IMG/VR virus record: IMGVR_UViG_3300032116_000004
Span: 186,001 to 250,000 of that record
Strand: one strand, 5' to 3'
DNA length: 64,000 nucleotides
Position 1 is the stretch's first letter. Every line of letters begins with the position of its first letter. The notes under the pieces are model-generated. The model was given only the letters and a program-made list of their open reading frames with translations, was not told where the DNA came from and did not search any database. Below are positions 24,657-39,169 of this stretch, in pieces. A program made the translations under genes and the position numbers.

Positions 24657-26122
24657 ACAACTTATCGTTGGGTATTTCCACCGCTTTTACCTGGACCAAC
24701 ATCTTATATTGCTTTGTAGGAACTTTCCTGGGCACACTGGTGGGAGTTCTTCCAGGACTGTCTCCATTGACTGCTGTGGCTATATTATTACCATTAGTTT
24801 ATTCCATCGGTGATCCAGTAACTGCACTAATATTGTTGTCGGGAATTTATTACGGGTCTCAATATGGTGGATCAACCACATCAATACTGCTGAAAATACC
24901 CGGAGAAGTACCGAGTCTAGTGACTGCCATCGACGGTTACGCTATGACCCGCAACGGTCGCGGTGGCGCGGCACTGACCATCGCCGCATTGGCCAGCTTT
25001 TTCGCAGGAACGATCACCACATTGTTGATAGCGATTTTTGCTAAACCATTGGCACAAATCGCATTTGCATTTGGATCAGCAGAATACACATCTCTCATGG
25101 TCATGGGCCTGTTGGCATCTGTGGCACTCACCAATGGGCCGTTCCTTCGTGGAGTAGGCATGGTATTGATCGGAATCTTGCTAGGAACTGTGGGAATAGA
25201 CATCAACACCGGAATAGAAAGATTTACCTTCGGATCTCTGACTCTCATGGATGGTATAAATTTTGCGATCATTGCCGTGGGTGTGTTTGGGTTTGGGGAA
25301 ATGATTTATAATCTCTTCCACGGACAAAAAATTTCAGCACAGATACCAAAATTTAAAGATTTATATCCTACAAAAAAAGAATTAAGAGACAGTGTGGGTC
25401 CTGGAGCCAGAGGAACACTGATTGGTAGCTTGCTGGGGATTTTGCCCGGTGGCGGTGCTTTGCTTTCTTCCTTTGCCAGTTATGTGGTAGAGAAAAAACT
25501 GTCCAAAGATAAAAAAAGTTTTGGTAAAGGAAATATAGCCGGAGTGGCCGGTCCCGAAGCCGCCAACAATGCCGGGGCCCAGATAAGTTTTATCCCAATG
25601 CTGAGTCTGGGGATCCCCACCACTCCCATAATGGCATTGATGATAGCATCATTGATGATCTTTAGCATACAACCTGGTCCAGAAGTGGTAAACTCTAACC
25701 AATCTTTGTTTTGGGGATTGGTGGTATCCATGTGGTTGGGGAACTTAATGCTGGTAATTTTAAATATCCCGTTGGTCGGGGTATGGGTCAGTGTGCTGAG
25801 AATCCCACAGGTTGTGTTATTCAGCATAATATTCTGTATCTGTGTTTTTGGCATTTATGTGATGAATAATAACATCACTGAAGTATGGCTATTACTACCA
25901 TTTGCTGTGCTGGGTTATATTTTCCGTAGATTAGATTGCGAGCCGGCTCCACTGGCCATGGGGTTTGTCATCGGTTTGTTGTTTGAAGAATATTTTAGAA
26001 AAGCCATGATGATATCAAAGGGTGACTGGATGATTTTTTTACAGAGTCCGATCAGTGCTACGTTTTTGTTGATATCATTGGTTGTGATCGCAATTAGTAT
26101 AATATTTAAAATTAAAAAATGA
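24644..26122 (+). CDS. tctA: Tripartite tricarboxylate transporter permease
   Basis: GVLPGLSP, YYGSQYGG, GPEAANNA, LGIP. Confidence 0.95.
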   Translation: MEIINNLSLGISTAFTWTNILYCFVGTFLGTLVGVLPGLSPLTAVAILLPLVYSIGDPVTALILLSGIYYGSQYGGSTTSILLKIPGEVPSLVTAIDGYAMTRNGRGGAALTIAALASFFAGTITTLLIAIFAKPLAQIAFAFGSAEYTSLMVMGLLASVALTNGPFLRGVGMVLIGILLGTVGIDINTGIERFTFGSLTLMDGINFAIIAVGVFGFGEMIYNLFHGQKISAQIPKFKDLYPTKKELRDSVGPGARGTLIGSLLGILPGGGALLSSFASYVVEKKLSKDKKSFGKGNIAGVAGPEAANNAGAQISFIPMLSLGIPTTPIMALMIASLMIFSIQPGPEVVNSNQSLFWGLVVSMWLGNLMLVILNIPLVGVWVSVLRIPQVVLFSIIFCICVFGIYVMNNNITEVWLLLPFAVLGYIFRRLDCEPAPLAMGFVIGLLFEEYFRKAMMISKGDWMIFLQSPISATFLLISLVVIAISIIFKIKK

Positions 26123-26453: not shown

Positions 26454-27458
26454 TTATTTGATCTGACTCCATACACGCTGACGGATCTGTTGTGTAAGAC
26501 TGTCAGGCAGTGGAACGTAGTCTAAGTCAATGGCATCTTTCTTCCCGTTACGGAACGCCCAGTCAAAAAACTTCAATGCTTCTTGGCTTTGATTTTTGTT
26601 TGCAGGATCTCGATACATCAAAATAAATGATGCTGTGGTCACTGGCCATACTGCATCGCCACGCTGATCAACTATACTCAATCCCATACCAGGCACAGAG
26701 AACCAATCGGCACCAGCGGCTGCGGCCGCGAATGTTAGATCATCAGGATGGACCCACTTGCCTGATTTGTTTTGCAGTTGGAGATAGGTCAACTTGTTTT
26801 TCTTGACGTAGGCATATTCCACATAACCTATGGAACCTCGGATGCGGGCCACATTGGCAGCCACACCTTCGTTGCCTTTGCCTCCCATAGCTGTGGTGGG
26901 GATCCATTTCACAGCAGGACCACGTCCCATACGATCTGCCCATTCTTTGCTTACTGTGGCAAGATAGTCTGTCCAGTTGAATGTTGTGCCAGAACCGTCG
27001 GCCCGATGCACCACAGTGATTGGTTGGTCTGGCAATGACTTACCAGGATTCAATGCTGTGAGTTTAGGATCATTCCACTTGGTGATGTTGCCCATGAACA
27101 CATCAGCCATTACGGGACCAGTGATGCGCAGTTCACCTGGCTTGAATCCATCCAAGTTAACGATAGGCACAGTGCCACCAATGATGGCAGGAAACTGAAT
27201 CAGACCTTCACGATCAAGTTCTTCGCCTTTCATGGGTGCGTCGGATGCCCCAAAGGTCACTGTTTTGGCTTTGATTTGGCGGATGCCGCCCGATGAGCCA
27301 ATGGATTGATAGTTGAGACCAATATTGGTTTCTTTCTTGTAGGCTTCGGCCCATTTTGCATAGATGGGGTAGGGAAAAGTTGCACCTGCCCCGGTGATAT
27401 CGGCTGCCTGTGCTGTAACCGCGACTGCGGCCAGTAGTGTCAGTATGAGTTTTTTCAC
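26454..27458 (-). CDS. pstS: Phosphate ABC transporter substrate-binding protein
   Basis: GAGATFP, GSSGG, FGASD, RADGSGTT, GNEGV. Confidence 0.96.
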   Translation of the reverse strand: MKKLILTLLAAVAVTAQAADITGAGATFPYPIYAKWAEAYKKETNIGLNYQSIGSSGGIRQIKAKTVTFGASDAPMKGEELDREGLIQFPAIIGGTVPIVNLDGFKPGELRITGPVMADVFMGNITKWNDPKLTALNPGKSLPDQPITVVHRADGSGTTFNWTDYLATVSKEWADRMGRGPAVKWIPTTAMGGKGNEGVAANVARIRGSIGYVEYAYVKKNKLTYLQLQNKSGKWVHPDDLTFAAAAAGADWFSVPGMGLSIVDQRGDAVWPVTTASFILMYRDPANKNQSQEALKFFDWAFRNGKKDAIDLDYVPLPDSLTQQIRQRVWSQIK

Positions 27459-27595: not shown

Positions 27596-27672
27596 GGGCC
27601 TATAGCTCAGTTGGTTAGAGCAGTGGACTCATAATCCATTGGTCCCTGGTTCGAGTCCAGGTGGGCCCACCA
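27596..27672 (+). tRNA. tRNA-CAT, probably Ile2 (lysidine)
   Basis: Full cloverleaf, CTCATAA loop, G1-C72, CCA. Confidence 0.9.
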
Positions 27673-27687
27673 TACAAAGAATACAGC

Positions 27688-27957
27688 ATGACATTACCAG
27701 ACGAAAGATATCGAGCCATTGTATATGCCAAGCAGTTCTGCGAAGATTTGTTGGATCCTAAGAAGACTCCTCGTGTGCCCAGAGACATCCGCCGCAGGGC
27801 GCTGGGAGTTCTAAGGCATTTTCCTGACGAGTATTATCTTTCCATGTTGGCAGAAGCACGTCCGGATATCATAGAACGCAGAGGCGAACCATTTGAACCT
27901 CTGTATAAAATGATCAAACAATACGAGTTGGAGAAACAATCATGCGACAAGAACTAG
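27688..27957 (+). CDS. Hypothetical protein
   Basis: MTLPDERYRA...LRHFP. Confidence 0.65.
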   Translation: MTLPDERYRAIVYAKQFCEDLLDPKKTPRVPRDIRRRALGVLRHFPDEYYLSMLAEARPDIIERRGEPFEPLYKMIKQYELEKQSCDKN

Positions 27958-28403
27958 ATCAACTGCTGTGCGAACGCTATCCCAAGATATTCGCCAATCG
28001 ACACGCTGATATGAAGACCACGGCCATGTGTTGGGGATTCGAACATGATGATGGATGGTTCAATATCATCGATCAGTTATGTGCCAACATCCAACATCAT
28101 ATCGATTGGAGAGAAAAACAACGCCAGTGGACCATTACTTTTAACAGTAAGGCTGCACCAGAAGAACTGAAAGACATTCCGGAAGTTGTTTCGCAAGTCG
28201 TTGCAGATCAAGTAAAGGAAAAGTTTGGTGCTCTGCGCTTTTACTATCATGGTGGTGACGATATCGTAGATGGCATGGCACGCATGGCTGAATCCATGAG
28301 CGCAGTGACCTGCGAACAGTGCGGTGCACCAGGCCGTCAGCGGGGCCGTGGCTGGATCGTGACACGCTGTGATGAACATGCAAAGGAAGACGAAAATGAC
28401 TAA
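27942..28403 (+). CDS. Hypothetical protein with C-terminal CxxC
   Basis: QVKEKFGALRFY...CEQCG. Confidence 0.7.
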   Translation: MRQELDQLLCERYPKIFANRHADMKTTAMCWGFEHDDGWFNIIDQLCANIQHHIDWREKQRQWTITFNSKAAPEELKDIPEVVSQVVADQVKEKFGALRFYYHGGDDIVDGMARMAESMSAVTCEQCGAPGRQRGRGWIVTRCDEHAKEDEND

Positions 28404-28710
28404 ACCAGAAAAGAAATTACTGAGTGGCACGGGCAAGATCGCAAACGCACAGCCCGGTGAGCCACTCAAGGTGGTTTTCGAACCCGGTTGTTTCGATCAC
28501 ATTGACGTGGAAAGCCAGGAAGAACTGGATCGGATCATGGCGGAAATACAGACCATGTTTGCTGGCATGTCTCGCGAAGAATTGGAAGCACAGAGCCGAC
28601 CACTCACGGACGAAGATATCGACGACCTGGATCCAGAAGAACGCGAAGCATTGATGCAGGCATTGGAACAGGCCCATGACCAAGAAACCCGAAAGCAACG
28701 TCTCAATTAA
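28396..28710 (+). CDS. Acidic hypothetical protein
   Basis: AAGGA SD. Confidence 0.6.
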   Translation: MTKPEKKLLSGTGKIANAQPGEPLKVVFEPGCFDHIDVESQEELDRIMAEIQTMFAGMSREELEAQSRPLTDEDIDDLDPEEREALMQALEQAHDQETRKQRLN

Positions 28711-29200
28711 GGTAGCGTCCAGCCCTGATCGGCATACCTTCCAGCGAGAAGGATATCTAAAACGCTGTGAAGAAAAAGGGGAAGAACCCAACCAAGCCTA
28801 TCTCGAGATGTGGGACAAGGTCAAACAGCAGGATGCCGAGTGGCACCAACAACAACATGTCAATGATCTCGAATATGACTTGAGATCAACTGACTGGATC
28901 GTTGCCAAAGCACGGGCCAGTGAATCTTACGCACAAAATATCTACGCGGCCTTGTGCAACATGCAGTGGCAAAAGATAGATGTATGGCCCGTGCTCAAAG
29001 ATGAACTCTGGTCATGCTCATGGCGCAGTGCCGGGGGTATCGTGGCCGATCTACGTGGTGAAGGTGACTATATCGATTGGTATTGTTCAGGCATGGCGGA
29101 CAAAGACGACACTGGATTCGTTCCAGAAGGCGCTGTGACAGATGAGATCCGGGAGGACTTCCAACGATTGGGGTGGCAGCCTGTGCCCTATGACGAATGA
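28676..29200 (+). CDS. Hypothetical protein
   Basis: 174-aa ORF. Confidence 0.65.
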   Translation: MTKKPESNVSIKVASSPDRHTFQREGYLKRCEEKGEEPNQAYLEMWDKVKQQDAEWHQQQHVNDLEYDLRSTDWIVAKARASESYAQNIYAALCNMQWQKIDVWPVLKDELWSCSWRSAGGIVADLRGEGDYIDWYCSGMADKDDTGFVPEGAVTDEIREDFQRLGWQPVPYDE

Positions 29201-29341
29201 TGGTTATTGATTTTTCCTATGATCAATATAAAAAAATATTCAGAAAAAACCTATAAAAACCATTGATCTAATAGCTATATACTGCTACAATTTTATATCA
29301 GTAGAAACACTGAGTCTCACAAAACTTCACAGGAGAAACAC

Positions 29342-29875
29342 ATGAAAACAGTAGGAAACAAAATCGAAAAATTCGCCATCACTGGCGTGAACCCAGGCAA
29401 GGACGATTTCTTCACCATCACAGAAGAATCATTTGCAGGCAAGTGGAAGGTCATCGTTTACTATCCCAAAGACTTTACATTCGTGTGCCCAACAGAAATC
29501 GTGGCCTACGACAAACTACACGGCGACTTCGCTGATCGTGATGCTGTGTTGCTCACAGGATCCACAGACAATGAGTTCTGCAAACTGGCATGGCAAGCCG
29601 CACATGAAGATCTCAAGAAGATCCGGCATATCCAGTTCGCTGACACACAGCGTGGTGAGTTGAGCCTGGTTGAGCAATTGGGTGTGTTCTTTGCACCAGC
29701 AGGCGCCGCACTCCGTGCTACCTTCATCATCGATCCCGAAGGTGTGATCCAGCATGTCACTGTCAACAATTTAAACGTAGGCCGTAGCCCAGAAGAAACT
29801 CTGCGTATCCTTGACGCTCTTCAAACAGGAGAGAAGTGTGCATGCAATCGTGCAGTGGGTGGAGAGACTCTATAA
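29342..29875 (+). CDS. ahpC: Peroxiredoxin
   Basis: YPKDFTFVCPTE, DALQTGEKC. Confidence 0.95.
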   Translation: MKTVGNKIEKFAITGVNPGKDDFFTITEESFAGKWKVIVYYPKDFTFVCPTEIVAYDKLHGDFADRDAVLLTGSTDNEFCKLAWQAAHEDLKKIRHIQFADTQRGELSLVEQLGVFFAPAGAALRATFIIDPEGVIQHVTVNNLNVGRSPEETLRILDALQTGEKCACNRAVGGETL

Positions 29876-30390
29876 TGACTGCCTGGGTAGATCAAATCAA
29901 GGAAACCATACCTGATTACGCCAAGGACACTCGTCTCAACATTGATGCAGTGATCAAACGCTCGTCTTTGCCCATAGAAGAAGCAGAAGCCGTGGCTTTG
30001 GCGGCTGCCTTTGCTACAGGCAATACGAAACTGTGGACCTGGATGCAGGGCCAGATCGCAGACCAAAAGGAAGCCGAGGCGGCCATCACAGCCGCTAGTC
30101 TAATGGCCATGAACAATGTATGGTATCCCTACGTCGAAATGGCCGAAGACGAGCGACTCACTGGTTTGCCAGCACAACTACGCATGAATGCTATTAGCTC
30201 CCATGGTGGGACGACCAAGGCTCGATTTGAGAGCTATAGTCTAGCCGCCAGTATCGTGGGCAAGTGCCACTTCTGCGTAAAAGCGCACTACGAAACACTC
30301 AAGAAGGAAGGCTACTCAGTAGAACAACTGCGAGACATCGGTCGGATCGCCGCAGTGATCACAGCAGTGGCTCGAGTGCTCAATAGCTAA
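29875..30390 (+). CDS. ahpD: Alkyl hydroperoxide reductase D
   Basis: MAMNNVWY, GKCHFCV..H; coupled to ahpC. Confidence 0.92.
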   Translation: MTAWVDQIKETIPDYAKDTRLNIDAVIKRSSLPIEEAEAVALAAAFATGNTKLWTWMQGQIADQKEAEAAITAASLMAMNNVWYPYVEMAEDERLTGLPAQLRMNAISSHGGTTKARFESYSLAASIVGKCHFCVKAHYETLKKEGYSVEQLRDIGRIAAVITAVARVLNS

Positions 30391-30430
30391 ATGTTACCAT
30401 GGCGGAGTTTAGTCTTTAAATACTCCGCCC

Positions 30431-31615
30431 ATGGAACTCCTCGAACAAAATCCCAAACTTGGTTTTTACACAGTAAACGGTAAGAACTTTTATTCTAAAC
30501 CTCAAGCCCTGCTAGAGGCCACCGCCACTGGTCAGTTTCCCACATGGAACTTCAATCGAGAAGTTTTTAGTCGCATGGACACAACCAAAGAGCCTCAGTT
30601 GAGCTTACGCGAACTGTATCGTATGCGGGCACAGCAACTGAGAGACCGATATGATTACATCCGATTGGAGTTTTCAGGTGGGTCAGACTCTGCTACAGTG
30701 CTCTATAGTTTTATCAACAACAACATACATCTCGACGAGGTGGTATTCCGCTATCCCATGCAAGGAGATAAAAATCTCGGCCCCGATGCCAAGAACATGA
30801 AGGCCGAAAATACCTTGAGCGAGTGGCACTTTGCGGCCAAACCTATCTTGCAAAAGTTGGCTGTCACCCATCCAACTATCAAGATCACCATGCATGATTT
30901 TTCCGACAACATCTTAAAATATCAAGGCGATGAATCATGGGTCAACAATGCCAAAGATTACTTACATCCTGAGCACACGTTCAAACACGACCCCTTGGGT
31001 CTAAAAGGTCACAAAGAGTTGGCCGAAACTGGCAAGCAGATTTGCATCCTCTATGGTGTGGACAAGCCCAAGGTCTGTATCAAAGATGGTCGTTGGTGGT
31101 TGTATTTCTTGGACATACAGGCCAATCACAGCCAGAACCAGCGTGGTCCTTATGACAACATTACCACAGAATATTTCTACTGGCAGGCTGATCTTCCGGA
31201 ACTCATAGTCAAACAAGCCCATACCATACGCAACTGGTTCATGACTCCCACTGCACAGCATCTACAGTTCCTAGTGCGTTGGCCCAATCACAGTGTAGCA
31301 CAACGTGGTGCCTACGAACAGTTGGCCAAGCCCTTGATCTACCCTGACTATGATCCCACCACATGGCAAACTACCAAGTCAACCAACAACTTCTACTCAG
31401 AAATGACTTGGTGGTTCTTCAAGAACTTCAAGGACACACGTTTCTACCAAGTCTGGGAAGCCGGTCTAGCGCACATGGTCAATTCCATTGATCCCAAGTT
31501 CTTTACCTATGAGCAAGGCCGTGCTGTGGGATTTGTTGGCTTCATGGATCAGTTTTACGATCTTGGGCCCACCGACTACGTAAATACCGACATCATCCAA
31601 GGATCTCTCAAATGA
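30431..31615 (+). CDS. PP-loop (adenine nucleotide alpha hydrolase) protein
   Basis: FSGGSDS; paralog of 47439-48575. Confidence 0.65.
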   Translation: MELLEQNPKLGFYTVNGKNFYSKPQALLEATATGQFPTWNFNREVFSRMDTTKEPQLSLRELYRMRAQQLRDRYDYIRLEFSGGSDSATVLYSFINNNIHLDEVVFRYPMQGDKNLGPDAKNMKAENTLSEWHFAAKPILQKLAVTHPTIKITMHDFSDNILKYQGDESWVNNAKDYLHPEHTFKHDPLGLKGHKELAETGKQICILYGVDKPKVCIKDGRWWLYFLDIQANHSQNQRGPYDNITTEYFYWQADLPELIVKQAHTIRNWFMTPTAQHLQFLVRWPNHSVAQRGAYEQLAKPLIYPDYDPTTWQTTKSTNNFYSEMTWWFFKNFKDTRFYQVWEAGLAHMVNSIDPKFFTYEQGRAVGFVGFMDQFYDLGPTDYVNTDIIQGSLK

Positions 31616-32511
31616 AAAAGTTTTTATTATCAATTGCCATTGCATTGGCGGCATTTTCTTCACACGCTCAACAGCAGATTTCTATAGTGTGGCCATTTGG
31701 CATGGGCGACACGCAGGCACAATATAGTCGCAGTCTAGTAGAAGAACTCAACAAGAATCAAAAGGCCTACACTTTCATCTTAGAAAATCGCCCAGGGGCC
31801 GGAGCTACCATTGGTGCCAAACATGTGGCAAGCACACCCAATTCTATTTTGTCCGCGTCCACAGCATTCTTTGTGAGACCTAACTTTTATCCTGAGGAAA
31901 GTCACAGTGTAGCAGACTTCCGGCCCTTGATGACACAGTGTGCCGCGCCCATGGTCATTGTGAGCAAACGATATCGCAATTGGAACGAAGTTGACAAATC
32001 AAAATCCATCAACATTGGCATTTCTGGGCTGGGTGCTACATCGCACTTGATGGCCATGGAGATTGTCAAGCAATATCCCAATGCTCAACCTGTGCCCTAC
32101 AAGGGCACTCGCGAAGCCAGTATAGATGTGATTGCAGGCAATATTGAACTCAGCGTGGCATTCTTGGGCGAGGTAGAAGGATTCCTTGATCGCGGTGATT
32201 TGTATGCTTTGGGTATTTCGGGCAGGAAAAAAGTGCGCGGCATAGCCACACTGGAAAGCCAAGGATTTGCTGGAGTGGGCGAAGTGGTCAACATGCACAG
32301 TCTACAAGTGCCACGATCCATGCCCGACTCACAGTATCAACAACTGCGCGGCATGATCATGCAAGCCGCTCGTGCTGATTCAGTCCAACGGGCCTATGCC
32401 GTGGACTACTGCGAATCCAGCAATCTTGATGCCATAGCCACACAGCGTTGGTTTGATTCACAGGTTGCCCTGTGGAAACGCCTGAGCCAAGGTGTGAAAC
32501 TGGCTAAATAA
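31612..32511 (+). CDS. Bug/TctC periplasmic binding protein
   Basis: Signal peptide, ENRPGAG..IG, VPYKG. Confidence 0.9.
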   Translation: MKKFLLSIAIALAAFSSHAQQQISIVWPFGMGDTQAQYSRSLVEELNKNQKAYTFILENRPGAGATIGAKHVASTPNSILSASTAFFVRPNFYPEESHSVADFRPLMTQCAAPMVIVSKRYRNWNEVDKSKSINIGISGLGATSHLMAMEIVKQYPNAQPVPYKGTREASIDVIAGNIELSVAFLGEVEGFLDRGDLYALGISGRKKVRGIATLESQGFAGVGEVVNMHSLQVPRSMPDSQYQQLRGMIMQAARADSVQRAYAVDYCESSNLDAIATQRWFDSQVALWKRLSQGVKLAK

Positions 32512-32656
32512 AAATGGCAGCGCCGGTCAGGTGATCGACGCCGGTTACAACGACGCCTAGGGTAGCAAACCCTTTTACCAGCATGATATGCCTGGAACGC
32601 CGAACCGTAGCGAGCAATCGCAAGCACATTTAAACTACCAAATTTGGATATAAAAA

Positions 32657-33616
32657 ATGAGCAAAACTACTAAGATTCGTTGGGTTATAGCCCATGAGCC
32701 TTTGAACCTTTTCCTTCGTGCCGCTGAAGATTTTGAGCGTCGTGTAAACGAACAACAAAGCGAGCACAAGATCGAAGTGGAAATCATGACCTTGACAGAA
32801 TACAGCCAGCGTTACAACGATGGTGTCGTCATCACCAAGCACGATCTCTTGGATCTCATGGAACAGGGCAAAATTGAAATGAGCCAGATGTATACCACAT
32901 GGCTCGCAGAACGCTATGAGCAAGACTTCTTGGCATTCGATCTACCATTCCTGTTCCGGGATCACGAGCATGCTACTCGCGTGTTCGAGAGCGAGATCGG
33001 CGAAGGTCTGTTACAGAAACTCACAGACAAGTCAAACGTGCGTGGCCTTTGCTACACATATTCCGGTGGTTTCCGCCAGATGATCGCTAACAAGAAAGTT
33101 TCTACTCTAGAAGAACTTGCTGGCACACCTGTGCGTTCAAACCGTAATCCTGTGGCACAAGCAACTATCGCTGCCTTGGGCATGAAGCCTGTTGTGGCCG
33201 AAGTTGAAGATCTGCGTCGTGTTGTTGTAGAAGGTCAAGCCGAAGGTGGCGAAACCAACTATCCTCGCATGTATCCTCTGCGCCACAATGAAGTCACCAA
33301 GTCAGTGATCGACACTGGTCACAGCTTGTTCTTGACATCGATGATCATTGGTGATCAGTTCTGGTCATCATTGAGCCCAGAAGTGCAGGCCGTGATCAAG
33401 ACTGCCGCTATCCTGGCCGGACGTGAAGAGCGTGCTGAAACCATCCGTGATGGTGCTCGTGCCGAGAAGCGTCTAGTGGAAGAAGAAGGCGCCAACATCG
33501 TCAAGTGGACACAAGAGCAACGTGAAGCCGCCAAGGTTGCACTGAGTGGTGTTTACGATCAGTTCCGTGATTCATTCACACCTGGTCTCATTGAGGCGAT
33601 TGAAAAGAAGGCTTGA
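32657..33616 (+). CDS. dctP: TRAP transporter substrate-binding protein (DctP-like)
   Basis: FDLPFLFRD, GGFR, EGGET; no evident signal peptide. Confidence 0.8.
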   Translation: MSKTTKIRWVIAHEPLNLFLRAAEDFERRVNEQQSEHKIEVEIMTLTEYSQRYNDGVVITKHDLLDLMEQGKIEMSQMYTTWLAERYEQDFLAFDLPFLFRDHEHATRVFESEIGEGLLQKLTDKSNVRGLCYTYSGGFRQMIANKKVSTLEELAGTPVRSNRNPVAQATIAALGMKPVVAEVEDLRRVVVEGQAEGGETNYPRMYPLRHNEVTKSVIDTGHSLFLTSMIIGDQFWSSLSPEVQAVIKTAAILAGREERAETIRDGARAEKRLVEEEGANIVKWTQEQREAAKVALSGVYDQFRDSFTPGLIEAIEKKA

Positions 33617-33636
33617 TAAGTAGGCAAGCATAAAAC

Positions 33637-33664
33637 AAAAACCCTACCAAGTGTAGGGTTTTTT
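33637..33664 (+). terminator. Intrinsic terminator
   Basis: AAAAACCCTAC-CAAGT-GTAGGGTTTTTT. Confidence 0.85.
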
Positions 33665-33687
33665 GTTGTAAAAAGGTAAACCAGAGG

Positions 33688-33716
33688 TTGACCTTATATA
33701 AATAAACCTATACAAT
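33688..33716 (+). promoter_or_regulatory. sigma70-type promoter for leaderless leader ORF
   Basis: TTGACC-17-TACAAT, ATG 7 nt downstream. Confidence 0.8.
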
Positions 33717-33723
33717 ACACACT

Positions 33724-33840
33724 ATGATGAAAACTTTAAGACCTTATTCGATATCATTTATGCAGAAGGAGCCAACAAGTCTCTTGTGGCACCCCACCTG
33801 CCTACGTAATGATGCGATTGGTCCGGAGGGTTCTGAGTAG
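33724..33840 (+). CDS. Putative attenuator leader peptide (38 aa)
   Basis: MMKTLRPYSISFMQKEPTSLLWHPTCLRNDAIGPEGSE*; 33 distinct codons. Confidence 0.65.
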   Translation: MMKTLRPYSISFMQKEPTSLLWHPTCLRNDAIGPEGSE

Positions 33841-33867
33841 AAATCAGATTGTAAAAATTATTCTACA

Positions 33868-33906
33868 CAGGACCCCGGAACTAAAAACTCCGGGGTTTCT
33901 GTTTTA
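33868..33906 (+). terminator. Attenuator-type intrinsic terminator
   Basis: CAGGACCCCGGA / TCCGGGGTTTCTG followed by TTTTAT. Confidence 0.8.
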
Positions 33907-33925
33907 TACACAAAGGAAAAAGAAG

Positions 33926-34105
33926 TTGACAGAAAAAATAGATTACAGTAAAATTGCCGATCGTGTTGTCGAACAAGCATTTGAGCATAGTGGGTTTGTC
34001 CTAGATGAACATGATATGCAACGATTGCTCCAAGGCAAGATAGATCGGGCTCGAAAAGAAATCGATGCTAGGGCTACATGTCCAGTCTGGCACACTGATC
34101 GATAA
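33926..34105 (+). CDS. Small hypothetical protein (59 aa)
   Basis: AAAGGA SD, TTG start; overlaps a TTGACA-17-TAAAAT match. Confidence 0.45.
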   Translation: MTEKIDYSKIADRVVEQAFEHSGFVLDEHDMQRLLQGKIDRARKEIDARATCPVWHTDR

Positions 34106-34106
34106 T

Positions 34107-34311
34107 CGAGCAAAGTGTAGTGGGAAACGAGGTCCCAGAGCGCACTCTAAACATGCTCTAAACGGGCGGGGTCCTGGATTGAAATCTCCGGCGGTAACGG
34201 AGAAAGTAAGATAGGCAAGCGGAGGATGTCTCCGCTTTGGCTCTGGCAACAGAGCCCATATTCAAACACATGACCGAGCAGTCAAGTCAATGAGTCGTGT
34301 GTTTGAATATG
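34107..34311 (+). ncRNA. Unassigned structured RNA
   Basis: Hairpins TCTCCG/CGGAGA, AAGCGGAG/CTCCGCTT, GGCTCTG-GCAA-CAGAGCC, 14-bp stem 34257-34270/34298-34311. Confidence 0.45.
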
Positions 34312-34314
34312 CAT

Positions 34315-34404
34315 GGGGGTTGTTCTCTACGGCGGACTGTAAATCCGTTGCCTTTAATATGTAGAGTGGCCGGCGATTAGGTTCGATTCCTTCAGTCCCC
34401 ACCA
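34315..34404 (+). tRNA. Atypical tRNA-Tyr(GTA)-like gene lacking a canonical D-arm
   Basis: CTGTAAA anticodon arm, TTCGATT loop, CCA. Confidence 0.6.
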
Positions 34405-34409
34405 AACAT

Positions 34410-34484
34410 GGTCTCATAGTATAATGGTTAGTATAGCGGCTTGTCACGCCGTTGATAGGAGTTCGATTCTCCTTGGGACCGCCA
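34410..34484 (+). tRNA. tRNA-Asp(GTC)
   Basis: Cloverleaf, CCA. Confidence 0.92.
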
Positions 34485-34490
34485 AACAAT

Positions 34491-34565
34491 TCCAAGGTAG
34501 CACAGCGGTAGTGCAGAAGACTGTTACTCTTTTGGTCGCAGGTTCGATCCCTGCCCTTGTAGCCA
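34491..34565 (+). tRNA. tRNA-Asn(GTT)
   Basis: Cloverleaf, one acceptor mismatch, CCA. Confidence 0.88.
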
Positions 34566-34571
34566 TGATCT

Positions 34572-34661
34572 CCCCCGCTAGCTCATGGAGAGCAGGTCGG
34601 CTTATAACCGATTAATCTAGATAAGGTCCAGGATGAGGTTCGATTCCTCAGCGGGGGACCA
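34572..34661 (+). tRNA. tRNA with TAT anticodon and long variable region
   Basis: CTTATAA loop, short D-loop, CCA. Confidence 0.8.
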
Positions 34662-34670
34662 AAAAAATAT

Positions 34671-34747
34671 TACGGCGTAGTTCCAACTGGCAGAACGACA
34701 GTCTCCAAAACTGTATGATGGGGGTTCGAATCCCTCCGCCGTAGCCA
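34671..34747 (+). tRNA. tRNA-Trp(CCA)
   Basis: Cloverleaf, CCA. Confidence 0.9.
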
Positions 34748-34754
34748 ACACAAT

Positions 34755-34832
34755 GTGAAGGTGGCAGAGAGGTCCAATGCAAGAGTCTGCAAAACTCTAA
34801 AACCGTCGGTTCGAATCCGACCCTTCACTCCA
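34755..34832 (+). tRNA. tRNA-Cys(GCA)
   Basis: Cloverleaf, U73, CCA. Confidence 0.92.
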
Positions 34833-35210
34833 TTAGAATTCTAGTCGTAGGCCTATGCTGAGATTGTTTATAACCAAAGCGGATTCCATACCAGTGACCA
34901 CTTTGAGATACAGAGTGCGGTTACGGCCTTGGAAATAATCTGCCGCAAAATAGTTGGCTACCATCCAAGTCACGAAATGCAGATCCACTGCTTGCGTGGT
35001 AGGATGCCGGCCCAACAACGGATTACGTTCATAGTAGCCTTCAGCATATCTGCGAGTCATGTTGCGTGTGGTCGCCCAATCACCCAGAATGGCCGCGTTG
35101 GATGCCAAGAACCAATTTTGTTGCTCTGTGGTCCAGTTAGACCAGGCCCAGCTAGCACTGGGCAACCATAGCAGGATGGCCAAGAGTTTTTTCACAACAA
35201 TATTTAACAA
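34833..35210 (-). CDS. Secreted/membrane hypothetical protein within the tRNA array
   Basis: Signal peptide KKLLAILLWLPSASWA, C-terminal Phe. Confidence 0.65.
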   Translation of the reverse strand: MLNIVVKKLLAILLWLPSASWAWSNWTTEQQNWFLASNAAILGDWATTRNMTRRYAEGYYERNPLLGRHPTTQAVDLHFVTWMVANYFAADYFQGRNRTLYLKVVTGMESALVINNLSIGLRLEF

Positions 35211-35211
35211 T

Positions 35212-35301
35212 GGAAGCGTGGCAGAGTCTGGTTTATTGCACCGGTCTTGAAAACCGACGATCCGAAAAGGTCCGTGAGTTCGAATCTCACCGCTTCCGCC
35301 A
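35212..35301 (+). tRNA. tRNA-Ser(TGA)
   Basis: Long V-arm, G73, CCA. Confidence 0.93.
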
Positions 35302-35306
35302 AACCT

Positions 35307-35396
35307 GGAGAGGTCCCATAATGGTATTGGAGCGGATTGCTAATCCGTCGGTCGGCGTAATCCGGCTTCTGGGTTCAAGTCCCAGTCTCTCCGCCA
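35307..35396 (+). tRNA. tRNA-Ser(GCT)
   Basis: Long V-arm, G73, CCA. Confidence 0.93.
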
Positions 35397-35399
35397 TAT

Positions 35400-35591
35400 C
35401 CCGTCCATAGCAAACGTGATTGCTGTCGCTTACTCAGCGTTACGAGTCGGGGGCGGAGAACCGTTAAGCAGAGTGCCCTTTTATTGGGAGTCCAAACCGC
35501 TGTGCTGAATCACAACAGCGAAGAAGTTAACAACGTGATGACAGAGTAGACAACTCAGGACGGGGCGATGTGGAAACGTGGCCGTCCACCA
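35400..35591 (+). ncRNA. Unassigned structured RNA ending in ACCA
   Basis: GGACGG can pair with CCGTCC at 35401 or 35582; ends ACCA. Confidence 0.4.
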
Positions 35592-35621
35592 AATATGTTT
35601 TTAGACAGGTGTGAATTCACT

Positions 35622-35696
35622 GGTGTGGGTAGTGTAATGGTAGCACACTTGATTGTGGATCAGGTAGTGCGGGTTCGAATTCCGTCCTTCACCCCA
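35622..35696 (+). tRNA. tRNA-His(GTG)
   Basis: G-1:C73, CCA. Confidence 0.9.
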
Positions 35697-35705
35697 AATG
35701 TGTGA

Positions 35706-36173
35706 TCAAGTGGGTGTTACTTGCCCGGTAACAGCATCCACATGCACAGGTCGGCGTGTGACAAATGCGAAATCATAGAAAGGATTGAAGCGATAGTCTA
35801 CTGTTTTGCGCAGTCTGCAGAATGTCCAGGTGTCGGTGATTCCGGCCTTGGCCATGGCCTGCTGTGCTTGGGCGCAACTCAGTTTGGGTGGATACACAAA
35901 CGCCGTGCATTCGGCCACTCGCGAATCATCAATCACAGGTGAGGTGGCATGTCCTGATGTATCAATGGTTATGGCATAGGGTTTTTGATCTTGAGAACCT
36001 TGCCAAACAGTATACATGGTTCCGCCTGCATTGGCTTCGGCGAGATAAAATTGCGATGCGCTCTGATAGAGATCCATGAGACTCTTGCCGCCCCATATTT
36101 GCTGATCGTATGTCAAGGGCGATAACACCCCCAGTCGTCTGAGATGTTTCTTTACAGCGGCTATGATTTTCAT
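35706..36173 (-). CDS. Hypothetical protein
   Basis: 155-aa ORF with SD, inserted in the array. Confidence 0.65.
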   Translation of the reverse strand: MKIIAAVKKHLRRLGVLSPLTYDQQIWGGKSLMDLYQSASQFYLAEANAGGTMYTVWQGSQDQKPYAITIDTSGHATSPVIDDSRVAECTAFVYPPKLSCAQAQQAMAKAGITDTWTFCRLRKTVDYRFNPFYDFAFVTRRPVHVDAVTGQVTPT

Positions 36174-36213
36174 GGTTAATCCCCTTTATTCGAGTATTTA
36201 TAGGTGTTTTTTT

Positions 36214-36290
36214 GCCCCGGTGACGGAATTGGTATACGTGTTGGTCTTAGAAACCAAATTTTAGGAGTTCGAGTCTCCTCTGGGGCACCA
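36214..36290 (+). tRNA. tRNA-Leu(TAG), short variable region
   Basis: Cloverleaf, A73, CCA. Confidence 0.9.
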
Positions 36291-36303
36291 AATTTATTAG
36301 TAT

Positions 36304-36380
36304 GCGGTAGTGACGGAATCGGCATACGTATCGGACTTAAAATCCGAGTTTTGTGGGTTCGAGTCCCACCTTCCGCACCA
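36304..36380 (+). tRNA. tRNA-Leu(TAA), short variable region
   Basis: Cloverleaf, A73, CCA. Confidence 0.9.
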
Positions 36381-36385
36381 TACAA

Positions 36386-36464
36386 CGGAGTGTAGGCTAG
36401 TCTGGTCCAAGTCGCCTGCTTTGGGAGCAGGAAACCGCAGGTTCGAATCCTGCCACTCCGACCA
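36386..36464 (+). tRNA. tRNA-Pro(TGG)
   Basis: CGGAGTG acceptor, CCA. Confidence 0.93.
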
Positions 36465-36465
36465 A

Positions 36466-37659
36466 TCACAAAGGATGTCTTAATAGATCTTTTAAACAAC
36501 GATTTGATTCATCTAGCGTGAGTCTTTTTAATTTGTCATGAAATCGCTGTTTGGCAAAATCCAGGTTAGCATCAAACCTTTGTTGATTTTGATTCCAGAG
36601 TCTGACAGTATCAACAGGATTTGTGAGCAAGTGCTTGTTATTACTCACGGCGGTATACAATCTATCTATAGGGTTATCTATGATGTCATACGAATGATCA
36701 ATGATGTCGTCAAACATATCAAATCCAAAACTACGATAAAGATCTACGGTTCCTCGACTAGATATCATGATAGGAAAATTCCGAGCATATATCGTGTGGA
36801 TAAATTTTTCATCGATGTTAATAGTTGGCTCGCAGAAAAGTCTATTTGAAACCAATTCTACAAAACTTGTTCTATACAAAGGACGCAGATTGTTTCCAAA
36901 ATTGTTCACGTTATCAAAGTCTAGCACTGTGTCAGATCCAGCCTCTGTCAAATAGATGTCGTTGCCATTATCATCACCAAATCGTAAATTATCAGGATTT
37001 GATATCATCTTGTCAAACCCTTGGCACATGATCTGTTTTACATGATCATTGTGATCATGATATTGCCAAGGGTTGTGATCAAGGAAATCCCTGCTAGGCA
37101 ATTTATCTAATTGTTTGTATAAATGACCAGTGCTGATATGGCAGCAATTATCTAGATCTAATCCATACAAAAGGCTACAGAGAGCCAATCGATGAGTGCG
37201 CATTTGTCTATTCAGTGCGATGCCTATTTTTTTAGATTGTTGATTCTTGTCGTTGATTGGGGATAATTTTGCATATAGATCATCTTCAGGAACGGTAAAC
37301 CATTTGCCTACTCTTACATTGGGCAGATTGAAATATCCATCATGATAATGATTACCTTGTAACATAAAGACAATGGTTTTTTCAGGAGATGCGAGCGCCA
37401 GGTTCCTGATGTCTTGGAAAATAGTGGGTTCTTGGCCTTCAGTCCAATAATCATACTCCTGTGGGAAATTGCCGTAATGAGGACTGTCTTCCAAAATCAA
37501 AAACAACAGGTTTTCGTTGAGATCAAGGTTTAACCATTGATTCCAAGATGTTATATGCGTAAAAACACTGTCGTGCGGCACAGAAATGGCATCAGTCACT
37601 GTGTCAAATAATTTTCGTGCCATGGGCAATCTGTGTGGCACATGAGTAAAATATTTCAT
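36466..37659 (-). CDS. 'TEK-motif' putative glycosyltransferase
   Basis: FVELVS..INIDEKF..NFP..GFDMFDDIIDHSYD; ATG 37659 chosen to avoid tRNA overlap. Confidence 0.6.
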   Translation of the reverse strand: MKYFTHVPHRLPMARKLFDTVTDAISVPHDSVFTHITSWNQWLNLDLNENLLFLILEDSPHYGNFPQEYDYWTEGQEPTIFQDIRNLALASPEKTIVFMLQGNHYHDGYFNLPNVRVGKWFTVPEDDLYAKLSPINDKNQQSKKIGIALNRQMRTHRLALCSLLYGLDLDNCCHISTGHLYKQLDKLPSRDFLDHNPWQYHDHNDHVKQIMCQGFDKMISNPDNLRFGDDNGNDIYLTEAGSDTVLDFDNVNNFGNNLRPLYRTSFVELVSNRLFCEPTINIDEKFIHTIYARNFPIMISSRGTVDLYRSFGFDMFDDIIDHSYDIIDNPIDRLYTAVSNNKHLLTNPVDTVRLWNQNQQRFDANLDFAKQRFHDKLKRLTLDESNRCLKDLLRHPL

Positions 37660-37681
37660 ATACAAATTTATGTAAACCCAT

Positions 37682-37759
37682 GCCCCCTTGGACAAATAGG
37701 TAAAGTCGTCTCTCTCAAAAGGAGAAGTTCTCTCGGTTCGAATCCGAGAGGGGGTACCA
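37682..37759 (+). tRNA. tRNA-Leu(CAA), short variable region
   Basis: CTCAAAA loop, A73, CCA. Confidence 0.85.
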
Positions 37760-37765
37760 AACAAT

Positions 37766-37841
37766 GCAGGTATAATTCAGCTGGAAGAATGTCACGTTGC
37801 CAACGTGGATGTCGTCGGTTCGAACCCGACTACCTGCTCCA
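37766..37841 (+). tRNA. tRNA-Gly(GCC)
   Basis: Cloverleaf, U73, CCA. Confidence 0.92.
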
Positions 37842-37915
37842 GAATTATGTCCCAGGCCTCCGACTATTGGCCACTCGTTGATGCGCAGTGGTTGCGTCTG
37901 TGTTTTCTTTTTCTT

Positions 37916-37990
37916 GCATCGTTAGTTTAATGGTAAAACGCCCTCCTTACAAGTGGGATAGCGGTGGTTCGATTCCATCACGATGCACCA
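37916..37990 (+). tRNA. tRNA-Val(TAC)
   Basis: Cloverleaf, CCA. Confidence 0.88.
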
Positions 37991-37992
37991 AT

Positions 37993-38068
37993 GCCGCTTT
38001 AGCTGATGTGGTCATAGCACCGGTTTGAAGCACCGAGGAACCTGGTTCGATCCCAGGGGGCGGCACCA
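37993..38068 (+). tRNA. tRNA-Phe(GAA)
   Basis: TTGAAGC loop, CCA. Confidence 0.88.
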
Positions 38069-38074
38069 CTCTGT

Positions 38075-38148
38075 TGGGGGTTAGTTAAATGGTATAACCA
38101 CGGATTTTGATTCCGTTATTATAGGTTCGATTCCTATACCCTCTGCCA
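38075..38148 (+). tRNA. tRNA-Gln(TTG)
   Basis: Cloverleaf, CCA. Confidence 0.88.
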
Positions 38149-38154
38149 ATCATC

Positions 38155-38230
38155 GGGACGTTAGCTCATTAGGTAGAGCAGTAGACTTTTAATCTATTGG
38201 TGGTGGGTTCGAATCCCGCACGTCCTACCA
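38155..38230 (+). tRNA. tRNA-Lys(TTT)
   Basis: Cloverleaf, CCA. Confidence 0.93.
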
Positions 38231-38234
38231 ATAT

Positions 38235-38309
38235 GGTAATGTAGCATAACGGTAGTGCTCCACCTTCATACGGTGTTCAGTGTAAGTTCGACTCTTACCA
38301 TTACCACCA
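38235..38309 (+). tRNA. tRNA-Met(CAT), elongator
   Basis: TTCATAC loop, G1-C72, CCA. Confidence 0.85.
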
Positions 38310-38314
38310 AATAT

Positions 38315-38390
38315 CCGGCCGTGGTCTAATGGATAAGGCAACGCTCTTCTAAAGCGTCCGATGTGGGTTCGATTCCTGCCGGCCGGGCCA
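38315..38390 (+). tRNA. tRNA-Arg(TCT)
   Basis: Cloverleaf, CCA. Confidence 0.92.
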
Positions 38391-38392
38391 AA

Positions 38393-38468
38393 CGGTCCTT
38401 AACTCAATGGATAGAGTGCCAGTCTTCGAAACTGGAGGTTGGGAGTTCGAGTCTCTCAGGACCGGCCA
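38393..38468 (+). tRNA. tRNA-Arg(TCG)
   Basis: Cloverleaf, CCA. Confidence 0.92.
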
Positions 38469-38470
38469 AT

Positions 38471-38544
38471 GCTCGGGTAGTTAAATGGTATAACGGCCGA
38501 CCGATAATCGGCTATTCCTGGTTCGATCCCAGGTCTGAGCACCA
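38471..38544 (+). tRNA. tRNA-Ile(GAT)
   Basis: CCGATAA loop (C33), CCA. Confidence 0.88.
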
Positions 38545-38635
38545 ATTTTGCCAAATCAGTCAACGCTGAACACTGCTGTGACGTTATATAAGTGTAGGAC
38601 ATAATTCCTACAGTTTCTAACCAAAGGAGAACTTT

Positions 38636-38845
38636 ATGAAACTCGTAACCACACTCGTAGCAAGTTTGTTTGCAGTATCCGCTTTCGCACAAGCACCTGC
38701 CAAGAAAGAAGAAAAGAAAGAAGCAGCCAAGCCTGCCGCAGCCGCTCCTGCACCTGCCGCCAGTAAGCCTGCCGACAAAAAGGCTGAGCCTGCCAAAAGC
38801 GACGCTAAAAAAGACGATAAAAAAGCCGAAGCCGCTAAGAAGTAA
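38636..38845 (+). CDS. Small secreted Lys/Ala-rich protein (Asr-like)
   Basis: Signal peptide ...SAFAQ then KKEEKK/PA repeats; AAGGAG SD. Confidence 0.7.
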   Translation: MKLVTTLVASLFAVSAFAQAPAKKEEKKEAAKPAAAAPAPAASKPADKKAEPAKSDAKKDDKKAEAAKK

Positions 38846-39071: not shown

Positions 39072-39086
39072 CTCGGGTTCTTTTTT
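39057..39086 (+). terminator. Intrinsic terminator immediately before tRNA-Ala
   Basis: AGGACCCGAGT-CTG-ACTCGGGTTCT-TTTTT. Confidence 0.75.
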
Positions 39087-39160
39087 GGGGGATTAGTTAA
39101 ATGGGATAACATCGGCTTTGCAAGCCGAGATTGAGAGTTCGATTCTCTCATTCTCCACCA
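39087..39160 (+). tRNA. tRNA-Ala(TGC)
   Basis: G3:U70, CCA. Confidence 0.92.
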
Positions 39161-39169
39161 TCCAACTCG

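Follow-up and report, generated by a model that had tools for sequence, protein, structure and literature searches.

Enzymes of the PP-loop ATP pyrophosphatase superfamily are marked by an SGGxDS pyrophosphate-binding loop after the first β-strand. Among them, the AsnB-type enzymes, with asparagine synthetase B (AsnB) and its relatives β-lactam synthetase, carbapenam synthetase, and TsnB9, adenylate carboxylates, while QueC (7-cyano-7-deazaguanine synthase) is a single-domain enzyme that amidates a carboxylate with ammonia. Carboxylates or sulfonates are bound by two families of receptors, the TctC/Bug family, associated with the tripartite tricarboxylate transporter TctCBA and rich in orphan receptors that outnumber the membrane units in Betaproteobacteria, and the DctP family of TRAP transporters (for example SiaP and the isethionate-binding DctP), associated with DctQ/DctM membrane partners. 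Phages are known to carry copies of host periplasmic binding proteins, such as cyanophage pstS, presumed to boost nutrient uptake during infection, but such auxiliary genes are usually single borrowed genes. Regulons in which one riboswitch controls both a transporter and an enzyme are also known, for example the preQ1 riboswitches before queC and precursor transporters.

The locus studied here combines elements resembling each of these. It lies in a window of 64,000 nucleotides, positions 186,001 to 250,000 of IMG/VR record IMGVR_UViG_3300032116_000004, which is part of a freshwater jumbo phage record of 315,778 bp with 26 tRNAs and a tmRNA. The preliminary description of the window had not recognized this setting, and the locus is a jumbo-phage auxiliary module rather than a bacterial operon.

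Gene content of the two units

The features of the module and its surroundings, in window coordinates, are the following.

24471–24656 (+): short (61 aa) TctB-like membrane protein whose end overlaps the TctA start
24644–26122 (+): TctA, the large membrane subunit of a tripartite tricarboxylate transporter
29342–29875 (+): AhpC peroxiredoxin
29836–30390 (+): AhpD-like CMD protein, directly upstream of PP1
30431–31615 (+): PP1, 394-aa PP-loop enzyme
31612–32511 (+): Bug1, TctC/Bug-family solute-binding protein with a signal-peptide-like N-terminus, predicted periplasmic
32515–32627 (+): conserved structured RNA leader, a riboswitch-like candidate
32657–33616 (+): DctP-family binding protein without a signal peptide, predicted cytoplasmic
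33637–33663 (strand unspecified): terminator-like hairpin closing unit 1
45344–46483 (+): outer-membrane porin gene preceding unit 2
46504–47442 (+): Bug2, divergent TctC/Bug-family binding protein with a signal-peptide-like N-terminus
47439–48575 (+): PP2, 378-aa paralog of PP1
48585–48603 (+): terminator-like hairpin closing unit 2

The preliminary description reported that an SGGxDS protein overlaps the start of a Bug gene and is followed by DctP, and that the same pair recurs in reverse order behind a porin. This observation is confirmed. PP1 carries FSGGSDS at residues 81–87, and its TGA (31613–31615) overlaps the ATG (31612–31614) of Bug1, which matches TctC PF03401 at E 1.3e-17 (64.7 bits, above the cut-off), has the N-terminus MKKFLLSIAIALAAFSSHAQQ, and has BugD and Bug27 as its closest solved relatives. 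After a 145-nt spacer follows the DctP-like gene, which matches PF03480 at E 5e-44 (151.2 bits). In the second copy, the porin matches Porin_4 PF13609 at E 2.8e-38, while Bug2, with the N-terminus MKKIVTSAMMSFLFAISGPSLAQS, scores 23.8 bits against PF03401, below the 27-bit cut-off, but reaches an hhalign probability of 99.1% (E 1.8e-18) against a profile of the phage Bug proteins. The TGA of Bug2 overlaps the ATG of PP2, which carries YSGGADS. PP1 and PP2 are paralogs, with 29% identity over 322 residues (E 1e-37), and are the only two such proteins in the genome, whereas the two Bug proteins are not detectably similar by BLASTP. No alternative genetic code was used. The hairpin after unit 1 has an 11-bp stem flanked by A and T runs, and that after unit 2 has an 8-bp stem followed by TTTGTTGT. 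The translational coupling emphasized in the preliminary description is not special here, because 4-nt ATGA overlaps are common between neighboring genes in this genome, and the overlap alone therefore says little.

The phage also carries transport parts that belong to the same picture. TctA is clear (PF01970, E 8.7e-143) and is the likely membrane partner of Bug1 and Bug2, although it is present in only 2 of 4 near-complete relatives. The TctB-like ORF scores 25.3 bits against PF07331 (E 1.9e-5), below the cut-off of 29.1, and matches only the first third of the profile. Signal-peptide-like N-termini are found in both Bug proteins and in 59 of 62 homologs, as judged by a hydrophobicity rule and not by a dedicated predictor. 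Compared with TctCBA, this set is phage-encoded, has a TctB cut down to 61 aa, and pairs the receptors with a PP-loop enzyme and a structured RNA leader.

The DctP-like protein starts with MSKTTKIRWVIAHEP, and its ORF cannot be extended upstream. None of 65 homologs has a hydrophobic N-terminus, and no DctM was found in 4 phage genomes, although host partners cannot be excluded. The protein is therefore predicted to be cytoplasmic and not a periplasmic receptor, which would be an unusual use of the fold. The conserved Arg in its VRSNRNP motif aligns with kiRv of 4xfe, and this carboxylate-binding Arg is kept in 15 of 20 DctP-like proteins and missing in five. In about ten related loci the gene is split into two ORFs.

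These properties could suggest that the binding proteins are not nutrient receptors but sponges or decoys, sequestering, for example, a host signal or defense molecule that the PP-loop enzyme inactivates. The lack of a membrane partner for the DctP-like protein in the phage, the recurrent gene split, and the quick diversification of the families in copy number and binding pocket would fit. However, the Bug proteins are predicted to be secreted and accompany TctA, a TctB-like ORF, and a porin, a normal transport set, and no known defense or counter-defense domain was found in searches that did not cover the padloc library. A predicted complex of PP1 with the DctP-like protein scored 0.00, which is not evidence either way. 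We consider this reading very unlikely.

The PP-loop enzyme family and its linkage to binding proteins

PP1 belongs to a large, almost entirely viral family (1,915 clusters at 50% identity) without a Pfam model, and it matched no Pfam, NCBIfam, or PHROG family. PP2 has 367 homologs. In an alignment of 45 diverse homologs, S82, G83, G84, D86, and S87 are invariant, together with R66, R71, Y74, D102, E131, K212, and E247. The AF2 model (pLDDT 91.5) places strand 76–81 before helix 85–95 and shows a Rossmann-like core plus a helical C-terminal part. Foldseek matches it to MnmA, GMP synthase, and LarE with probabilities of 0.97–1.00 and also to TilS, while VIA gives Z scores of 7–11 to AsnB, TilS, LarE, GMP synthase, and NadE. 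The best fold matches are AsnB (1ct9, Z 10.9, 288 residues aligned), human ASNS (10.1), β-lactam synthetase (9.1), TsnB9 (8.9), and carbapenam synthetase (8.4), with 242–288 residues aligned to AsnB and its relatives. The protein is thus a genuine PP-loop-fold enzyme, as the preliminary description held.

The similarity to AsnB is nevertheless only moderate, with an rmsd of 5.4 Å and 9% identity (about 9–11% across this group). There is no PF00733 hit at E ≤ 0.01 for PP1 or PP2 and no match in the phage's own genome. The N-terminal Ntn glutaminase domain with a catalytic Cys after the initiator Met is absent: PP1 starts with MELLEQN and PP2 with MTLSKN, the PP-loop lies at about residue 82, and a distinct N-terminal element of roughly 55 residues is present. 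No sequence-level match to any characterized PP-loop family was found, and a profile search of PDB sequences gave no hit.

We have also considered that the enzyme is a QueC analog. The nearest named clusters by language-model features carry QueC labels and there is weak HMM similarity over the motif, but the scores are far below the cut-off (12.4 bits for TIGR00364 against 150, and 14.5 bits for PF06508), and the protein is about twice as long. No cysteine of a QueC-type zinc site is invariant, and none of 4 phage genomes has a TGT/DpdA gene, so this idea was dropped. An NAD-salvage pathway, combining a Bug27-like receptor, a cytidylyltransferase-like neighbor, and a NadE-like enzyme, was likewise dropped, since the neighbor carries a mannose-6-phosphate-isomerase-type cupin domain and sits among sugar-nucleotide genes.

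The preliminary description would have been contradicted if homologous PP-loop genes showed no association with binding proteins, and the opposite is found. The pairing recurs with shuffled order in about 90 related loci (labeled L with a number below) and is not chance. Of 90 distinct PP genes, 56 have a Bug or DctP-like gene immediately adjacent, against 82 of 1001 (8%) other genes in the same loci, and 72 have one within two genes. The neighbor type changes about 45 times on the PP tree, so the link is kept through rearrangements. The same holds in more distant members, L014 having the order TctC-PP-x-AAA...DUF2201 also seen for PP2, and L095 having PP-TctC. Some PP genes (L012, L031, L051, L098) nevertheless stand without a binding-protein gene nearby, and one near-complete relative has no DctP-like gene.

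An alternative is that the two parts are neighbors without a shared pathway, the enzyme modifying a nucleic acid or nucleotide, as TilS, QueC, or MnmA do, next to independently acting uptake genes. The module lies directly before the tRNA and tmRNA array, in a variable island rich in other auxiliary genes where AhpC, PstS, and TctA come and go, so that some adjacency could be positional, and TilS/MesJ scores Z 8.4, with MnmA, LarE, and QueC also among the fold matches. On the other hand, PP genes sit in operons behind the same RNA leader as TctA and Bug genes (see below), there are 2–4 diverging paralogs per genome, which is unusual for a single tRNA-modification enzyme, the absence of TGT/DpdA argues against a deazaguanine pathway, no Cys is invariant for a zinc site or an Fe-S cluster, and the longest fold alignments are with AsnB-type enzymes rather than TilS. 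Together with the persistence of the linkage through rearrangements, this makes the alternative unlikely, although it is the strongest of those considered.

A conserved structured RNA leader

A structured RNA of roughly 110 nt, not seen in the preliminary description, lies directly upstream of the DctP-like gene. The model of this RNA scores 93.6 bits (E 8e-22) at the locus, 13 of 19 pairs show compensatory changes, and 98% of cells are paired, against 23–55% in slid controls, shuffle controls being in agreement. Folding of the single sequence is not significant on its own (z −0.89), so that the case for the RNA rests on covariation. No Rfam 15 match at E ≤ 1 over window positions 29000–34400 covers the element, and no terminator-type expression platform is evident. 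A loose DNA pattern for the RNA searched in viral contigs gave mostly chance hits, with 1 of 80 true.

The leader occurs once per phage genome, always inside the module, and on the sense strand 2–66 nt upstream of 40 DctP-like and 12 Bug genes. In metagenome contigs it heads [RNA]-Bug-PP, [RNA]-TctA-Bug-PP, [RNA]-PP-x-TctA-Bug, [RNA]-DUF2061-PP, and [RNA]-PP, with TctA behind the leader in L302, L259, and L265 and a porin preceding [RNA]-PP in L275. As with the preQ1 regulons, one conserved leader stands before unrelated gene families (a transporter subunit, two binding-protein families, an enzyme) that plausibly handle one compound, but ligand sensing by this RNA is inferred only.

Proposed role of the module

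The above results suggest a conserved auxiliary module of a clade of freshwater jumbo phages that captures a small anionic, most likely carboxylate-bearing, solute and activates it chemically inside the infected cell. In this view, a porin would let the solute into the periplasm, where secreted TctC/Bug proteins would bind it and hand it to a TctA/TctB transporter, phage-encoded here and host-encoded in relatives that lack tctA, while the DctP-like protein would bind the same or a related compound in the cytoplasm. The PP-loop enzyme would adenylate an acid group with ATP, releasing pyrophosphate, and a nitrogen nucleophile would attack the acyl-AMP to give an amide, as in asparagine synthetase, β-lactam synthetase, and QueC. 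The RNA leader would control the genes as one regulon, probably by sensing a metabolite or ion. The analysis establishes the gene content, the fold class, the invariant motif, the conserved linkage, the absence of signal peptides on the DctP-like proteins, and the structure and placement of the RNA, whereas the transport route, the cleavage of ATP and the rest of the chemistry, the identity of the substrate, and ligand sensing by the RNA are inferred. We hold this explanation with moderate confidence only.

The interpretation given in the preliminary description, an undescribed make-and-bind or scavenge-and-activate small-molecule system, possibly signaling, is partly supported. Scavenge-and-activate is the better half of it, while nothing points to make-and-bind or to signaling. 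Literature searches found no description of the module.

Two more specific versions concern the solute. In the first, it is an iron-chelating carboxylate such as citrate or a carboxylate siderophore, the system helps the infected cell to obtain or handle iron, and the RNA senses iron status or that chelator. TctC is the tricarboxylate (citrate) receptor family, and genes flanking the module in different lineages are iron- or peroxide-related (AhpC and AhpD-like, rubrerythrin, Fe-SOD and an IscA-like protein, ferritin, 2OG-Fe(II)/TauD oxygenases, and radical SAM enzymes). The DUF2061 membrane proteins between the leader and PP belong to a group whose genes are induced by iron limitation or loss of Fur in Caulobacter (PMC3751524) and listed among iron-responsive genes in Shewanella (PMC12442407). 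This is, however, guilt by association without ligand data, the flanking genes are variable, no siderophore synthetase or TonB-type receptor genes were seen, and AsnB-type enzymes are not known to take part in iron uptake, which makes this version unlikely.

In the second, which is even less likely, the solute is an organosulfonate or sulfate ester, and the enzyme activates a sulfur oxyanion, as CysD does, or processes the sulfonate, serving sulfur supply in sulfate-poor lakes. A TauD-family dioxygenase directly follows the leader in L287, the isethionate-binding DctP (8t9t) is among the best solved relatives of the DctP-like protein (E 4.4e-20), CysD, PAPS reductase, and APS reductase appear among the fold matches at Z 6.6–7.4, and peroxiredoxins are induced by sulfate starvation in pseudomonads. 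However, the TauD case is a single locus, the AsnB-type matches are clearly better than CysD, the DctP similarity is generic across the family, and no other cys or ssu genes were seen.

A further reading, possible but doubtful on present evidence, is that the leader is a new riboswitch class whose ligand is the compound handled by the module, and that the PP-loop family, the cytoplasmic DctP-like protein, and the secreted Bug proteins form a previously unknown phage-encoded salvage pathway, importing a specific host-environment metabolite and converting it into something the phage needs.

In contrast to cyanophage pstS, the binding proteins here come with a dedicated enzyme, their own membrane subunit, a porin, and a cis-regulatory RNA, and a whole system appears to have been assembled and kept in an abundant clade of lake jumbo phages. 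The RNA offers a direct experimental handle, as its ligand would probably name the substrate of the whole module and show what these phages take from lake water during infection. A PstS-like gene is carried by this phage as well.

In RNA-library contigs the DctP-like, AhpC, and AhpD-like genes are covered but PP1 and Bug1 are not, which hints at separate expression levels, although contigs cannot prove absence. AhpC (PF00578, E 6e-22) and the AhpD-like protein (PF02627, E 1.1e-10) are variable context and not core, being kept in L001–L004, L072, L076, and L092 but absent in many other loci. Among relatives of TctA, examined for an indication of the host, the best hit is a 7-kb MAG contig that may itself be phage. 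DNA and PP1 protein searches of the cultured-phage collection found nothing, and the nearest cultured phages, by RNase H, are PA5oct-like jumbo phages at about 52% identity.

Gene organization of the two units and their setting in the phage genome

The pairing of a PP-loop gene with a binding-protein gene, as put forward in the preliminary description, holds in both copies. The features that make up the two units are the following.

30431-31615, PP1, a 394-aa protein with FSGGSDS at residues 81-87
31612-32511, Bug1, a TctC/Bug-family protein (PF03401, E 1.3e-17) with a typical predicted signal peptide
32515-32627, a conserved RNA element in the spacer before the DctP-like gene
32657-33616, a DctP-family ORF (PF03480, E 5e-44)
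45344-46483, a Porin_4 gene preceding the second copy
46504-47442, Bug2, a divergent Bug gene
47439-48575, PP2, a 378-aa paralog of PP1 with YSGGADS

The stop codon of PP1 overlaps the start of Bug1 as ATGA, and the stop of Bug2 likewise overlaps the start of PP2. Bug2 lies below the Pfam cut-off, but it reaches 99.1% hhalign probability against a profile of the phage Bug proteins. The two enzymes are 29% identical (E 1e-37) and are the only two in the genome. A third, shorter PP-loop-like ORF (257 aa; G000:C1:123549-124316 of the phage record, outside the window) shows only a weak match to the QueC profile (24.9 bits summed) and is unrelated to PP1 and PP2 by BLAST. A perfect 8-bp hairpin (GGCGGAGT...ACTCCGCC; 30403-30431) ends two bases before the PP1 start codon with no T-run after it, and is possibly a processing or translation-control element.

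The locus is an auxiliary-gene island of a freshwater jumbo phage and not a bacterial operon, the window being part of a single 315,778-bp contig, an IMG/VR virus record estimated to be 91% complete. Nearly all genes are on one strand, and the RNase H is about 52% identical to that of PA5oct-like jumbo phages. The same DNA occurs in lake and freshwater metagenomes from many studies. The genome carries 26 tRNA genes and a tmRNA within 17 kb (27596-44485); the tRNA genes cover all 20 amino acids, with three CAT anticodons and an Ile-TAT, while the tmRNA (39566-39893), which ARAGORN marks with an asterisk, has the tag ANDELYALAA. The island additionally holds an AhpC gene, an AhpD-like (CMD) gene, a 61-aa TctB-like ORF, and the following two genes.

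24644-26122, TctA (E 8.7e-143)
26454-27458 (-), a PstS-like phosphate-binding protein gene, on the opposite strand next to TctA and a classic phage auxiliary gene

The closest bacterial hit to this TctA, 57% identical to it compared with about 32% for any other, is found on L100 (CAZFPR010000130.1), a 7-kb contig binned as a Hyphomicrobiales MAG, and this short contig may be a mis-binned phage fragment.

The PP-loop family and its association with binding proteins

PP1 and PP2 match no Pfam, NCBIfam or PHROG family and no PDB sequence, yet they have hundreds of full-length homologs, all unnamed. A profile search of 1.84 billion representatives finds 1,915 clusters at 50% identity, of which 1,085 are at E<=1e-30, the 150 best listed being 363-434 aa long. 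Structure-based and language-model searches show that the family is almost entirely viral. In an alignment of 45 diverse members the SGGxDS residues are invariant, along with several charged residues.

The AlphaFold model of the enzyme is confident (pLDDT 91.5), and a Foldseek search with it finds only PP-loop enzymes. An exhaustive structural alignment ranks asparagine synthetase B first (Z 10.9, 288 residues), followed by human ASNS, beta-lactam synthetase, TsnB9 and carbapenam synthetase, with TilS (Z 8.4) also in that range, while LarE, GMP synthase and NAD synthetase score lower. There is no glutaminase domain. We therefore place the enzyme in the PP-loop superfamily as a new family which, as inferred from these predicted-fold comparisons, works most like the AsnB-type carboxylate-adenylating, amide-forming enzymes, but which is not a member of PF00733.

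To examine the linkage, about 90 loci were retrieved from IMG/VR and other assemblies, genes were called, and families were labelled with iterated HMMs. The gene order varies widely, including PP-Bug-DctP, PP-DctP-Bug, PP-PP-Bug, Bug-PP-Bug, PP-DctP-DctP-Bug-PP and others. Of 90 distinct PP genes, 56 have a Bug or DctP-like gene as an immediate neighbour and 72 have one within two genes, whereas for other genes in the same loci the figure is 8%. On a tree of the PP proteins the type of neighbour changes about 45 times, and the link is therefore maintained and not merely inherited once. More distant members show it too: locus L095 has PP-TctC, and locus L014 has TctC-PP-x-AAA...DUF2201, the same order as in window 46504-52065. 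In the window the genes following PP2 encode a MoxR-like AAA ATPase (49009-50103) and a DUF2201 metallopeptidase/VWA protein (50767-52065), and their order is kept in the distant locus L014/L015. Near-complete genomes carry 2-3 PP paralogs and partial records up to 4. An absence of association between homologous PP-loop genes and binding proteins, which had been named beforehand as the result that would overturn the proposal, was thus not observed.

The two binding-protein families differ in their N-termini. Fifty-nine of 62 Bug homologs pass a simple hydrophobic-N-terminus rule for a signal peptide, and for the other three the called start appears to lie too far upstream, whereas none of 65 DctP-like homologs passes it. 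The DctP-like ORF of the window begins directly with the mature domain and cannot be extended upstream, and no DctM is encoded in four phage genomes. The DctP-like protein is therefore predicted to be cytoplasmic, which is unusual for this family. Its ligand-anchoring arginine is kept in 15 of 20 copies. In about ten relatives, on many independent contigs (L010, L063, L074, L076, L077, L082, L084, L086, L089 and L093 among the retrieved loci; for example L074:6339-6812 and 6809-7294), the gene is split into two overlapping ORFs of about 160 aa each, the second piece starting MKIRTNRNPVAQ, at the ligand-anchoring arginine. This may represent a conserved two-piece protein or a programmed frameshift.

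A conserved structured RNA leader

The 145-nt spacer before the DctP-like gene holds the conserved element at 32515-32627, in which invariant blocks (GCA-R-CGCC, GACG-Y-CGG, GACGCC, TTTAC, GAACGCC, CCGTA, AAGC) are separated by hairpins that covary. RNAalifold predicts 19 pairs, 13 of them with compensatory changes. On a MAFFT alignment 98% of cells pair, compared with 23-55% when the partners are slid, and there are 101 compensatory cells against at most 13 in the slid controls. No Rfam 15 family matches the element.

A covariance model finds exactly one copy in each of five phage genomes, always inside the module, and 54 copies in 76 loci. In the 53 copies tabulated the element is on the sense strand; 40 stand before DctP-like genes and 12 before Bug genes, nearly all 2-66 nt before the start, and one reaches the end of its contig. 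Twenty further copies from metagenomes head the arrangements RNA-Bug-PP, RNA-TctA-Bug-PP, RNA-PP-x-TctA-Bug, RNA-DUF2061-PP, RNA-PP and RNA-TauD-like. The occurrence of one leader in front of a transporter subunit, two unrelated binding-protein families and the enzyme is the strongest evidence here that these genes form one functional unit, although binding of a small molecule by the RNA is only inferred.

Contigs from freshwater RNA libraries of three studies match the AhpC gene, the CMD gene and the DctP-like gene with part of its leader exactly, while none covers PP1 or Bug1. As contigs cannot show absence or transcript ends, this only suggests that the DctP-like gene is expressed at a higher level.

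Proposed uptake-and-activation module and alternative readings

The preliminary interpretation, that of a make-and-bind or scavenge-and-activate small-molecule system with a possible signalling role, is supported in part; scavenge-and-activate is the better half of it, and nothing points to signalling or to make-and-bind. Our best reading, which we consider about as likely as not, is an uptake-and-activation module for an as yet unidentified anionic solute. In this view, the solute would pass through the porin to a secreted Bug receptor, then through TctA/TctB to a cytoplasmic DctP-like binder, and would finally be adenylated and amidated by the PP-loop enzyme, all under a riboswitch-like leader. 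The gene content, the conserved linkage, and the structure and placement of the RNA follow directly from the sequences analyzed, whereas the transport route, the catalytic chemistry, the nature of the solute and ligand sensing by the RNA are inferred. The main rival explanation is that the enzyme acts on nucleic acids and is only a positional neighbour of the binding-protein genes. A predicted complex of PP1 and the DctP-like protein gave no verdict.

The recurrent iron and peroxide genes around the module, namely AhpC, AhpD-like, rubrerythrin, Fe-SOD, IscA-like, ferritin, 2OG-Fe(II) oxygenases and DUF2061, suggest an iron-chelating carboxylate as one candidate for the solute. DUF2061 is induced by iron limitation in Caulobacter (PMC3751524). 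DUF2061 genes are also listed among iron-responsive genes in Shewanella. In some metagenome contigs (L277:1317-1760, L304:310-786 and L246:2389-2628) DUF2061 membrane proteins with tandem domains lie between the RNA leader and the PP genes. Alternatively, a TauD neighbour and the similarity of the DctP-like protein to the isethionate receptor suggest sulfonates.

The individual parts belong to known superfamilies. What is new relative to the libraries and literature searched are the enzyme family, the predicted cytoplasmic DctP-like protein, the assembly of these parts in phages, and the RNA leader, which may, tentatively, represent a new riboswitch class.

Further genes of the window lie around the two units. 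At 4350-11625 there is a sugar-nucleotide modification cluster, possibly for an unusual sugar, comprising a DegT-type aminotransferase, two epimerase/dehydratase genes, and split E1-dehydrogenase/transketolase-like genes. Upstream of the porin-Bug2-PP2 unit lie the following three genes.

41212-41646, a malonyl-CoA-decarboxylase-like fragment
42306-42896, a metallophosphoesterase
43201-44388, a radical SAM enzyme

A radical SAM gene also precedes the RNA-TctA-Bug-PP arrangement in the metagenome contig L302.
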